DNA of 64,000 bases from Piromyces finnis finn (GCA_002104945.1 MCFH01000057.1:186001-250000); one strand, 5' to 3'. Shown: positions 49,178-53,469, counted from the first letter of the stretch. Numbers and translations are program-made. Notes: generated by a model not told the origin, from the sequence alone.

Positions 49178-50534
49178 ATGAAAAGAATACATTTTATTTT
49201 TGCAGTAGGTTTAACTTTATCAACTGGCACTTACGCATTACGCGATATTAGTTCTACTGAATTGGTAAAAGATATTAAATTAGGTTGGAATTTAGGTAAT
49301 ACTTTAGATGCAGAATGTACAAATTGGTTGGATTATAAATATGATCAAGTTGCTTCAGAAACTTGTTGGGGCAATGTAAAAACAACTGAAAATTTATTTA
49401 TATCTCTAATTAATAAAGGATTTAATCTTTTTCGTATACCGGTAACATGGAAAGGTCATTATGGAGCAGCACCGGGATATAAAATTGATAAAGATTGGTT
49501 AAAAAGAGTTCACGAAATTGTTGATTACCCATACCAAAATGGGGCATATGTTATTATTAATACTTATTTTGAAGATTGGATAAATACATATCCAACTAAA
49601 TTAAAGAAATCAAAAGAAATTTCAAAAAAGTTGTGGGAACAAATTGCTGAAGAATTTAAAGAGTATGATGAACATTTAATATTTGAATCCATGAATAGTC
49701 CAAGAAAGATTAATAGTCATGAAGAATATGGAATTGGTGATGATGAATCTTGGAAATTTATTAATGAAATTAATAAAATATTTATTAACACGATTCGTAA
49801 TGGTAGAGGAAATAATCCAAAAAGACATTTATTAATACAACCTTATGCAGGCATTCTTCATGAAGAAACTATTGATAAACTTAATATTCCAGATAATGAT
49901 AAGAAAATCATGGTTTCACTTCATGCTTTCATTCCAAACGACTTTACCAGTGGAAGTAAAAAATCGTTTACTGGAACATCCGATATTGATTGGACCATGA
50001 AGGTTATCGATAATAAACTACTATCTAAGTCTGTTGCAACAATAATTTCAGAATTTGGTGCCACTCATCATAATGATGAAGATGAACGTCTTAAATGGGC
50101 TGATTATTTTATATCCAAGGCAACTGAAAAAGGTATACCATGTTCATTATGGGATAATGGCAAATTTGAAAGGGGTAATGATAGCTTTGGAATTATTGAT
50201 AGATCATCCTTTGAAATTAAATACCCTGACTATGTAGATGTTCTATTAGAAGGAAGTTACAATTCTAAAGTAGAAGAGAATAATTTTTTTTTTTTAAACA
50301 TGTATTTAATTTTAATTATAAATCATTAATTAGATTTCTCCATATTAATAATAATAAAAATGTAAAATATATTAGGATTCTACAAATGAAAAAGTTAATG
50401 ATAATGTGAAAAAAGATGAAAATAATAATAATAATGACTTTATTAATGGATCAATATTAAAAGCAAGTATATGGTCATTATGTTGGATGACAAGTCTATT
50501 TTTCTTTTTTATACTCATAAAAATTAGTATTTAA
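49178..50534 (+). CDS. GH5 subfamily 4 cellulase-fold protein lacking the catalytic acid/base Glu, predicted GPI anchor, 2 exons (49178-50269, 50376-50534)
   Basis: Signal peptide; GWNLGNTLDA, FRIPVTW, FESMNSPR (normally NEP), SEFG, WDNG. Exon 2 reads DSTNEK...FINGSILKASIWSLCWMTSLFFFFILIKISI*. No dockerin or CBM visible. Confidence 0.9.
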
Positions 50535-50863
50535 CAAGTTATGCTGTGAAAGATTTATAAATTCATTTCTTTAAAATTTATTATTTCAGTTTCAATATTA
50601 AAACAATGTTTATTATCAATTTTATAGAATAAAAAAATAAGATATTTTAACTTTTCAAAAATATCCAAATTATTTTTTTTTCAAAATATAAAACGTTTTT
50701 TTAAAAAAAACACTATAATTTAAAAGTATCAGGTAAAAATGTATAGATTGATTTTCTTATTTTATTTTTTTTTTAAAATAAAAAAGTTTTATAACATTAA
50801 TTTATGTATGACCATGAATATATGAATATATTGTTTTTTTTTTTTGTTTTTTACATCTATATT

Positions 50864-52294
50864 TTAAAAAATATTATAATAAGAATTTAAAATGATACAA
50901 ATTAAAATTAAAAATAGATTAATAAAACTAAAATAATAAGAATTATTAATTGAACTATTTTGATTTCCTATTACTTCCTTATCTGAGTTATTTTGTGTTT
51001 CTACAGTTTCTTTATTTGAATCAGTTTGATCTGTTTCACTTTTATTATTTTGATCTTCGATGTATTCTTTATTTTCAAGTATAATATTTATAATATCATT
51101 GATACATAAACTATTATTGTCATTATTTCCCCATTGATAAGATTTACAAATTTCATTGCAACAATCATTCTTTCTTAAAACATATAAATGTTTAATAGCA
51201 CGATTATAATTTTTTTCAGACCAATTAGAATTTAACGACTTTAAATCTATATTTTCCCAATTCTTATTTATTATATCATTAAAAATTTCTAAATTCTTAA
51301 AATCTTCACATCCCATACTATGAGCTAAAGATATTAATATTGATTGACGTTCTATTGAACATGTATTATATGCCTTTTTACATAAAGTACACTCTTGAAT
51401 ACAGTTAATAGCTTTATCGATATCCCTATATAACCAATTTATGGCATTATCTTGAGTACAGGTATCAATCAAGTCTTTACATTGTTCATTTAAATCATCA
51501 TTACTTGAAACCTTATTTTCACTACATAATTTTCCATAGCCAATTAATGGTAAGTTCTTATAATTAATATAGGGAGTGCAAGCATTAAGATTTTCTGTAT
51601 TTTCTTCATTTTTTATTAATAAAAATGATTTTTCATATTCAGTAATAGGAATATAATTTTTATAAAAATCCATAAATTTAGTAATACTTGTTTCACTAAA
51701 AATATTCTGTTGTTTTTTTTTCATAATTAACTATAGACATCATTCTTTTATTACAAGTATAGTCTTTGTAGTCTCTAGTAATCACAGCCTTAAGATTATC
51801 ATTTATATTTGTATTGTTTGTATTGTTAATCAAGTCTTCTAAATCCTCTACTTCATCTATATTAATACCTTTATTTATATAATTTATAATGTATTTTGAT
51901 AGAGGGCATATTTCTCCTATATTATTTTTAGTACAAAAAATAAATTATATGCTTTCAAATTCATAATATAATGTCCAACCTTTCTTTCATTTGCATCATC
52001 ACTTTTATAACATTCTGAGTCTATATTAAAAGATTCATCTACAAAAACTTTGCATTCATCATTATCTAAAATTTTACATACTTCTTCAATATTATTTTTT
52101 GTCATATATTCAAGACTTTCAAAATATTCTGTATTAAATAAATTTATATTTTTAATACAATTTTTAAATTTTATATATTCAGTTATACATTTATTCTTTT
52201 CAAGTGTTTCGAAATTCTTTAGTTCAATACCATTGACAACTCTACTTGTATAGTTAAATAATATAACGATGAATGTAATTAAAACCGATTTCAT
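50864..52294 (-). CDS. Secreted Cys-rich domain fused to a T4-type (GH24) lysozyme-like domain with a GPI-type tail; interrupted by two compensating homopolymer frameshifts (pseudogene or sequence error)
   Basis: ORFs 51917-52294 and 50864-51724 share a frame. The intervening DNA is open in a shifted frame (CTKNNIGEICPLSKY...TCNKRMMSIVNYE). Domain at about 51170-51620: LIKNEE...PYINYKNLPLIGYGKLC...LYRDIDKA...RQSILISLAHSMG...NW...SNW...NRAIKH. Confidence 0.7.
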
Positions 52295-53469
52295 CTTTCA
52301 CACTATGATTTACAGACAATTTTTAAGTAATAAAAAATATTATAACAATTTTAACAATAAAAAAAAAAAATAAAATAAATAATTAGATAAATCAAAATAT
52401 TATTAACAACAATTTACATAAATACTATAGTATAAGAACAAAATAGTAACTAAAATTGAAAATCACTTCTTTATATATACATGAAGATTTTCATTCTTCT
52501 TATATATCTATTAATACTAAGATAATTAAAATTATTATTGTTTATAACCATAATTCTTTCAAAAAATTAATATTATATGAAATACTATAAATTATTAATG
52601 ATTTAGTTTTAATATTTGTAGTATAACTTTGATACTAAATTAATTTAACTTTACTAAATGGTTTTAAACTTTATAATTTTTATCTTCATTTAATATATTA
52701 ATAAATAAATAATATATATAATAATTTTATCATTGTTAAAACTATTTTATTTTCTTTTTTATTTATACTAAACGTCATAAACCTTTTTTTTTTTTTGTGA
52801 AATTAATAGAAAAAAAAAGGACTGATATTGTTATAATAAATGAATGATAATAAAATTGATGATTATAATTAAAAATCAAATGAAAAATAATATTGTATAT
52901 ATATACATTTAAAGAAAAGAATAAATTATAAGTGTTTCCTTAGACATTGACATTGATGTATTATATTCAAAAGAATATTGTAACGCTTTTTATAAAATAA
53001 ATAAATAAAAGAAATTAAACTAATTTATTTTGTTTAATTCTTTTTTTTTTTTATATTTACTTTTTATTCTTAAAAATTTTTTATTTTTATATAATTCCAT
53101 AGTAATTCCTTAAACTTATTTATTTGTTTAAATAAATTATAAAAAATAAAATTATTTTAAATTTTGATGTTTAATTTAGGATTTCTTTCATTTTTTTAAT
53201 ACAGTTAATTATAAGTCAACTGAAAGAGGAAATATTAAAAGTAATAATGAAAAATGTAGAATAAAAATAATTAATACCATTAATCTATTATGATTCTTAC
53301 AGAATTTTTGGAACTACAAAAACTTTTATATTTCTTAATATAACTATCGTACTAAGTTAATCACCTAATTAATTTTCAGTAGATTCATGAATTGAATTCT
53401 ATATATAATTTATGTGTTTAAAAATCTTTAGTTCATATATTTCTTAGTCAAAATTACTTATTAATATTT

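Follow-up and report, generated by a model that had tools for sequence, protein, structure and literature searches.

In T4 lysozyme (T4L), Glu11 acts as the acid and faces Asp20 and Thr26 across the cleft (PMC5606550); in goose-type lysozymes and in lytic transglycosylases, a Glu alone is sufficient (PMC5674055). Glycoside hydrolase family 24 (GH24), to which T4L belongs, has already been described in fungi, as have active fungal GH24 muramidases (PMC8778642, PMC10394673), and the expansion of the family in Piromyces has been published and counted (PMC8778642). In PMC10394673, with reference to Randich et al. 2019, SpmX of the Caulobacterales (PDB 6h9d) figures as a GH24 domain that was co-opted for a non-lytic cellular role. 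Here we analyze a locus on the minus strand of a 64,000-nucleotide (nt) stretch of the Piromyces finnis finn genome (GCA_002104945.1, MCFH01000057.1:186001-250000; this whole stretch is called the window, and positions are counted from its first letter). The locus encodes a T4-lysozyme-type GH24 domain in which several active-site residues are replaced, followed by an acidic stalk and a putative membrane anchor. From comparison with its relatives, this protein appears to belong to a new clade of anchored, catalytically degenerate GH24 proteins in gut fungi, although the P. finnis copy itself may be broken; our literature search found no description of an anchored or catalytically degenerate GH24 protein in gut fungi.

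Three coding-like pieces, open reading frames (ORFs) A, M and B, lie on the minus strand within the coordinates of the locus, and its features are as follows.

50864-52294, minus strand: the locus, from the ATG at 52294 to the stop codon ending at 50864
52294-51917, minus strand: ORF A, 125 codons
51980..52294, minus strand: ORF A exon, with a signal-peptide-like N-terminus (MKSVLITFIVILF...VNG) and then a 5-Cys region
51917..51979, minus strand: candidate GT..AG intron of 63 nt, used by the GenBank model, with donor GTTGGA and TACTAAA 12 nt before the AG
51699..51917, minus strand: ORF M, 73 codons without a stop, in a frame that differs from those of ORF A and ORF B
51713..51721, minus strand: A9 homopolymer, at which the coding signal switches from the frame of ORF M to that of ORF B
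51724-50864, minus strand: ORF B, 286 codons, opening with the ATG at 51724
51124..51643, minus strand: GH24 (T4-lysozyme-type) domain, ORF B residues about 28-200
50951..51123, minus strand: acidic, Asn/Ser/Thr-rich stalk, placed by composition and the AlphaFold2 (AF2) model
50864..50950, minus strand: C-terminal hydrophobic tail (YYFSFINLFLILICIIL), placed by hydropathy and a model helix at residues 259-285

The domain encoded by ORF B has a genuine two-lobe GH24 fold of the T4-lysozyme type, as the initial annotation had read it from the sequence. The Pfam family PF00959 (Phage_lysozyme) matches ORF B residues 50-171 with 25.8 bits and an E value of 1.4e-5 (gathering cutoff 22.3). ORF B by itself matches T4L weakly in phmmer (E about 1e-3), and the profile of an alignment of ORF B with 27 relatives (alignment A1) matches T4L residues 3-163 at about E 1e-37; 23 of the 28 aligned relatives also match PF00959. 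The AF2 model of ORF B, built on A1, has a mean predicted local distance difference test (pLDDT) score of 83, with values >90 over residues 30-200, and Foldseek matches this model to T4L with a probability of 1.00 and a target template modelling (TM) score of 0.76-0.79. Similarly, in an exhaustive structural scan (VIA), the model matches T4L structures with Z scores of 17-18 (17.5 for 201l, with 158 residues aligned at 2.9 Å), and matches other GH24 structures at lower scores: 11.7 for DLP12, 11.0 for FAHEc1, 10.4 for P22, 10.2 for SpmX and 9.7 for the Trichophaea saccata enzyme. Chitosanases are found at a Z of about 8.

Proteins with the same layout are found in other gut fungi. When the domain was scored against 1.84 billion representatives, 30 matches were obtained at E ≤1e-3. 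The closest (P0002), with 52% identity, is encoded on a fungal metagenomic contig of 1.4 kb with 23% GC, and has EEN and YINY..LPAIGYG motifs, a stalk and a hydrophobic C-terminus as in the window's protein. Upstream in the same exon are ~100 residues of a Ser/Thr/Glu-rich linker; because this exon begins at an acceptor-like TTTCAG, at least one further 5′ exon of P0002 would lie off the contig. Two further relatives, Neocallimastix californiae ORY27137.1 (P0006, a ‘Lysozyme-like protein’) and the Pecoramyces ruminantium model Orpsp1_1 1181984 (P0005), each consist of one ORF that encodes a signal peptide, a GH24 domain, a stalk rich in Asn and a hydrophobic tail. Thus the arrangement of domain, stalk and tail recurs in both of these genera and on a metagenomic fungal contig. 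The homologs from these two genera have no extra N-terminal Cys-rich module or linker. No additional members of the anchored clade were recovered in a profile search with a second alignment, A2.

The catalytic motif of ORF B reads ...KNEENTENLNACTPYINYKNLPLIGYG. Residue equivalences were taken from the A1-to-T4L alignment and a table of its columns, and the phmmer ranges put ORF B residue 60 at T4L residue 26. The equivalences are as follows.

T4L Glu11: ORF B E41, kept, within an NEEN motif that is aligned to EEG in the family and DEG in T4L
T4L Asp20: ORF B N54, replaced
T4L Thr26: ORF B L60, replaced
T4L Gln105: ORF B S136, replaced
T4L Gln141/Thr142/Pro143: ORF B K171/N172/Y173, replaced
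T4L Trp138 and Arg145: the same residues in ORF B, kept

The proposal that the Glu is kept while Asn and Leu stand in for the Asp and Thr is thus borne out by the T4L alignment (E41, N54 and L60), and degeneration reaches beyond that motif, to the positions of Gln105 and Gln141/Thr142. According to the column table, every one of the 24 sequences that fall outside the tail-bearing group, those of phages among them, has Gln at the position of Gln105. The IGxG turn is preserved in ORF B, and an insertion of 4 residues between the Glu and Asp positions is found throughout the clade (12 intervening residues versus 8). The loss of the Asp and Thr argues against hydrolysis of the T4 type, and the loss of the invariant Gln105 together with Gln141/Thr142 argues against normal muramidase activity. 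As a separate observation on the same A1 column, the Asp20 position is occupied by Cys in five of the seven phage-like relatives, as well as in P0015 and P0019.

The catalytic positions of the other tail-bearing proteins differ among themselves. P0002 keeps the Glu and has Asn and Ala at the other two positions, the Pecoramyces protein reads Glu/Asn/Thr and so has a single change (Asp to Asn), and the Neocallimastix protein reads Lys/Gly/Val, having lost even the Glu. These differences bear on the alternative that the protein is an active glycan-cleaving enzyme that uses the Glu alone, in the manner of a goose-type lysozyme or a lambda-type lytic transglycosylase or with chitin as substrate, and serves as a surface-anchored antibacterial or wall-remodelling enzyme. 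The equivalent of Glu41 is conserved in the window's copy, in P0002 and in P0005, there is established precedent for mechanisms with a single Glu (PMC5674055) and for active GH24 muramidases in fungi (PMC10394673), and the GH24 proteins of early-diverging fungi have been classed as wall-remodelling (PMC8778642). However, the sister protein from Neocallimastix has dispensed with the Glu as well, the cleft residues Gln105 and Gln141/Thr142 are replaced, and the positions that are replaced vary between clade members, which resembles relaxed constraint on catalysis. We consider an active enzyme of this kind distinctly unlikely.

The GH24 part of ORF B contains 13 Cys. Eight Cys of the domain are common to the eukaryotic clade and missing from the phage-like relatives, and four more are common to the window's protein and P0002. 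This Cys content fits an oxidizing, extracellular setting.

The acidic stalk and hydrophobic tail of the initial annotation are readily recognized. The stalk contains 13 Asp/Glu, 4 Lys/Arg and 19 Asn/Gln among 63 residues, and is modelled by AF2 as two helices (residues 208-237) followed by a disordered segment, with pLDDT <50 over residues 239-261; equivalent low-complexity regions are present in P0002, P0005 and P0006. The C-terminus consists of small residues (NQNSS, within NQNSSINNS) and a short spacer, a hydrophobic stretch of 17 residues with a mean Kyte-Doolittle value of 2.45, and then NSYYNIF and the stop codon. We think that this tail is a C-terminal membrane anchor, for which attachment by glycosylphosphatidylinositol (GPI) is plausible. 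The C-termini of P0002 and P0006 fall inside the hydrophobic stretch and are GPI-like, but a longer Pecoramyces form (P0059) continues after the hydrophobic stretch into a tail with Lys and Arg (KLYRNM...), which is of the transmembrane type. Thus, of the claim that the protein is GPI-anchored, the hydrophobic C-terminal tail stands, but the type of anchor does not, since it comes from heuristics and the Pecoramyces relative looks transmembrane. With regard to that relative, the JGI model (P0005) stops within the hydrophobic segment, and the product of a Logan contig (P0059) runs 25 residues further, including the Lys and Arg. Hence P0005 is probably truncated, and the Pecoramyces protein probably spans the membrane with type I topology.

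To place the domain among its relatives, we used a maximum-likelihood tree that was rooted by assumption on the sister group without the shared Cys, and in which many of the sequences come from metagenomic contigs. The window's protein groups with P0002 (support 100/96), and the Neocallimastix protein joins these two (97/84); the Pecoramyces protein is unplaced within a Cys-rich clade of 17 members (98/97). Most other members of this clade, from rumen eukaryote-like contigs, keep the Glu, Asp and Thr; three members carry SH3_3 (bacterial) modules and one carries Phage_lysozyme2. One SH3b-GH24 gene lies on contigs of 19% GC beside an intron-split RINT1 gene, and is therefore eukaryotic and gut-fungus-like. 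The dN (nonsynonymous divergence) against P0002 is 0.34 and the dS (synonymous divergence) is 0.92, the latter near saturation, so that the comparison is a rough sign of constraint.

The nearest non-eukaryotic relatives of the domain are phage endolysins. In the sister group without the Cys, one endolysin is encoded on a contig of a Mu-like phage that also has Mor, GemA, Portal_Mu and Mu F genes, and another on a second phage-like contig. An old phage or bacterial origin of the whole rumen-eukaryote GH24 clade fits these relationships. Horizontal acquisition, as suggested at the outset, is therefore compatible with the tree in the form of an ancient transfer, but not as an event specific to the window's gene, because the fungal copies sit inside the wider Cys-rich clade. 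GH24 proteins of the Dikarya, such as the T. saccata enzyme, are not among the 30 sequence matches; this, together with their greater structural distance, hints at a separate origin.

Several side observations concern the breadth of this clade. The A1 member that matches Phage_lysozyme2 (PF18013) is probably P0011 (515 amino acids), in which GH24 follows a long N-terminal region, and this rumen eukaryote-like sequence would then probably have a double-lysozyme architecture. P. finnis also has a PF18013 protein (ORX49608.1), to which a preprint refers as a xenolog (bioRxiv 10.1101/2021.12.02.471044). P0010 and P0077, the latter from the cluster of P0019, are encoded on contigs (L005:1-5562 and L007:1-12603) of tightly packed, long, intron-free genes of eukaryotic type, including ones with a PH domain, LRR and RING, that look more like those of rumen ciliates than of fungi. 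The Cys-rich GH24 clade may span several groups of rumen eukaryotes. In N. californiae (MCOG01000195.1), the GH24 homolog (L002:6001-6813) has a divergent neighbour 1.3 kb away (L002:3884-4663) that encodes a secreted-looking protein of 259 amino acids with a PG_binding_1 domain (E 4.8e-12); the two genes may be a small peptidoglycan-related pair or a coincidence.

Upstream of the GH24 domain, the reading of the locus is more complicated. ORF A begins with MK, followed by a hydrophobic core of 11 residues and a VNG that resembles a cleavage site, and has a codon-usage log-odds score (LLR), trained on the ten longest ORFs of the window, of 0.51 per codon. The signal peptide and Cys-rich helical domain that had been assigned here are in part apparent: the N-terminus is signal-peptide-like and is followed by 5 Cys, but the helical character comes from a single-sequence AF2 model of low confidence (pLDDT 51). 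ORF A has no match in Pfam above cutoff; a word search for its relatives gave just the GenBank model itself, and the best score from the Atlas, 0.81, is within noise. A UniRef label of ‘DUF19’ for ORF A was not reproduced. A second contig (257 nt) from X1, an independent public run, matches the window just over 23 bases (52280-52302) and 21 bases (52118-52138) and is otherwise unlike it; this contig may derive from another site in the genome, at which a related or rearranged version of the signal-peptide part is present.

The family to which ORF B belongs is secreted and rich in disulfides, but ORF B itself lacks a signal peptide, and the signal-peptide part is joined to it solely through an unverified intron or a frameshift. 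GenBank has two separate models at the locus. One (P0076, BCR36DRAFT_374175, 115 amino acids) consists of ORF A, the 63-nt intron (51979-51917) implied by its C-terminus (...ANERK|EKYALYQNTL), and ten more codons; the other (P0001) is a partial GH24 model of 178 amino acids (51619-51086) with neither start nor stop. The initial annotation had read the signal-peptide and Cys-rich part as fused to the lysozyme domain, which does not hold for the genomic sequence as it stands: there are two models, there are stops between the parts, and the frame is broken at the A9 run. To join them would require either a non-canonical intron of 249 nt, or an intron combined with a +1 frameshift at the A9 run.

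Separate GenBank models might indicate two independent genes, namely one for a small secreted Cys-rich protein (115-125 amino acids) and a GH24 unit from the ATG at 51724, itself the start of a 286-codon ORF, that is either a tail-anchored protein facing the cytosol or untranslated. However, the 192 nt between ORF A and ORF B are coding-like in composition, all relatives of the domain have signal peptides, which, with its 13 Cys, makes a function in the cytosol unlikely, and the GenBank GH24 model is a fragment at both ends. Two genes thus seem very unlikely to us.

Indeed, the coding signal runs through the gap between the two ORFs, and changes frame twice in doing so: it is in frame 0 to ~51980, in frame 2 over 51944-51720, and again in frame 0 from ~51730. 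ORF M, which accounts for the middle section and is in no annotated model, scores +0.40 LLR per codon in its own frame, compared to -1.17 and -1.31 in the other two. It would encode an acidic, Asn-rich linker with 2 Cys, and has no match in Pfam. Its open run of about 71 codons was reached in 35 of 20000 shuffles of 51979-51731 (p about 0.002). Given this coding-like codon usage and an open run that is rare in shuffles, ORF M appears to be coding at present or to have been so until recently.

The two frame changes differ in how they can be explained. The first can be explained by a predicted phase-1 GT..AG intron of 86 nt (52002-51917), which uses an alternative donor at 52002 (GTGATG) and leads into the ORF M frame; the segment 51917..51979 has the lowest GC (0.167) and coding score (LLR 0.13) of the locus. 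The second lies within 51730-51699, at the A9 run, where a continuous frame would need one base fewer. Two explanations for the second change were considered and rejected. For a short canonical intron that bridges ORF M and ORF B, there are just GT..AG pairs of 25-55 nt with non-consensus donors (GTTAAT, GTCTAT and GTGATT). An assembly error at A9 as the main explanation is ruled out by a 1346-nt contig from X1, which covers 50957-52302 with 0 gaps, 0 differences and no splice joint. These are short-read contigs whose molecule type was just guessed to be RNA, so that an unspliced contig says nothing firm about splicing or expression. In another run there is one synonymous difference, 51158 G>A, which by our own reading of the sequence is in the third base of the Cys189 codon.

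We favour the idea that the locus derives from a gene for a non-lytic, surface-anchored, glycan-binding GH24 pseudoenzyme, of which the P. finnis copy is frameshifted or unusually decoded, and we give this reading, drawn from sequence and models, about an even chance. The ancestral gene would have encoded, in one unit, a signal peptide, a small Cys-rich N-domain, an acidic linker, the disulfide-rich GH24 domain, the acidic Asn-rich stalk and a membrane or GPI anchor. The GH24 domain would have become a pseudo-muramidase, which kept its fold, the Glu and the equivalents of Trp138/Arg145 but lost those of Asp20, Thr26, Gln105 and Gln141/Thr142. Such a domain at the surface would bind, rather than efficiently cleave, a beta-1,4 glycan of N-acetylglucosamine and N-acetylmuramic acid (GlcNAc/MurNAc), for which the candidate ligands are bacterial peptidoglycan and the fungus's own chitin. 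Because there are two shifts of frame in the coding signal, of which the second falls in the verified A9 run, the P. finnis copy would be either a young pseudogene with a +1 frameshift at A9, or a gene that needs unusual splicing or recoding.

Several points weigh against this reading. The signal peptide and the GPI signal were judged by eye and by hydropathy. The loss of catalytic residues is no proof of inactivity, because goose-type lysozymes and lytic transglycosylases are catalytic with just a Glu. Finally, ORF B is open over all of its codons in sequence where ~10% of random codons are stops, and ORF A and ORF B, which are in the same frame, are joined exactly by a 249-nt GT..AG pair (51979..51731) that skips ORF M.

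These last observations are what would be expected if the gene were intact and spliced, with a phase-0 GT..AG intron of 249 or 273 nt (from 51979 to 51731 or 51707) and a product of ~390 amino acids, in which case ORF M would be intronic, a relic or an alternative exon. Such a structure would also provide ORF B with a signal peptide, as expected from its secreted, Cys-rich homologs. The would-be intron, however, has 23% GC and is coding-like in one frame, including the long open run of ORF M. Furthermore, there are 26 in-frame single-intron combinations that join ORF A and ORF B, so that finding one is unsurprising. The intron we used as a local reference, in the CK2-beta gene (47137-47010, minus strand, ~128 nt, very low GC), has the donor GTAAAT and the acceptor AAAAAG; the donor GTTGGA is unlike it, and no candidate donor at the locus starts with GTAA, a comparison made with this one local donor. 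Neither the X1 contig nor GenBank has the two parts joined. Hence we regard an intact spliced gene as unlikely.

A more speculative extension of the pseudoenzyme reading, which we think improbable as it stands, is that a gut-fungal clade displays a catalytically dead, disulfide-stabilized phage-lysozyme fold on the cell surface to recognize peptidoglycan, as a sensor of bacterial contact or an adhesin, or as a decoy for lysozyme inhibitors, with expression in P. finnis gated by restoration of the frame at A9 through transcriptional slippage or ribosome sliding. In the decoy version, the protein would soak up bacterial lysozyme inhibitors and so protect the intact GH24 paralogs of the fungus.

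With respect to its surroundings, the locus lies in a window of 19.9% GC, with ankyrin-repeat genes upstream and a convergent gene of the GH5 cellulase family (ORF 49178-50329, plus strand; Pfam Cellulase 1.7e-54). No further GH24 paralogs were found within the window by tblastn. The GenBank model of the GH5 gene spans 49178-50627 (plus strand), with 406 amino acids over 1450 nt, an intron and a spliced last exon; because this model is spliced, the hydrophobic ‘tail’ obtained by reading through to 50329 may be outside the real product.

Anaerobic gut fungi live in close quarters with rumen bacteria, and to our knowledge almost nothing is known of how they sense them or fend them off. The family described here consists of two groups, one that looks catalytically intact and often carries SH3b wall-binding modules, and a small clade with a putative membrane or GPI anchor in which the catalytic Asp/Thr and residues of the cleft have been lost. 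Should the anchored forms bind peptidoglycan, gut fungi would have a lysozyme-derived equivalent of the peptidoglycan-recognition proteins of animals, and a eukaryotic parallel to bacterial SpmX. With respect to annotation, GenBank appears to mis-model the locus as two fragments.

Comparison with the known systems brings out what is particular to the window's protein. It shares with T4 lysozyme (gpe) and T4-type endolysins the two-lobe fold over ~160 residues, the Glu, the IGxG turn and the Trp138/Arg145 equivalents, but differs in the replacement of the Asp20, Thr26, Gln105 and Gln141/Thr142 equivalents, in the 4-residue insertion between Glu and Asp, in its 8-12 cysteines, and in a eukaryotic secretory and anchor context in place of a phage lysis cassette. 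The CWBD-GH24 protein of T. saccata (PDB 8b2s; PMC10394673) is likewise a fungal, secreted GH24 protein, and its SH3-like module has a parallel in the three relatives of the window's protein with SH3_3. That enzyme, however, is an active muramidase and structurally farther from our model (Z 9.7 versus 17-18 for T4L), whereas in the window's protein the catalytic residues are degenerate and an anchor at the C-terminus takes the place of the SH3-like module. SpmX also reuses a phage-type GH24 domain for something other than lysis, and its muramidase domain is a structural match (Z 10.2). In SpmX, the GH24 domain is N-terminal and the protein is anchored in the membrane at its C-terminus via a linker. 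SpmX is a bacterial protein of the cytoplasmic membrane that keeps its catalytic residues, while the window's protein comes from a eukaryote, is rich in disulfides and lacks the Asp, Thr and Gln; common descent of the two is not evidenced beyond membership in the family. The most similar proteins are ORY27137.1 and Orpsp1_1 1181984, which likewise have a signal peptide, a Cys-rich GH24 domain, an Asn-rich stalk, a hydrophobic C-terminus and degenerate catalytic positions, but which differ from the window's protein in their single-ORF structure and in the particular residues that each has lost.

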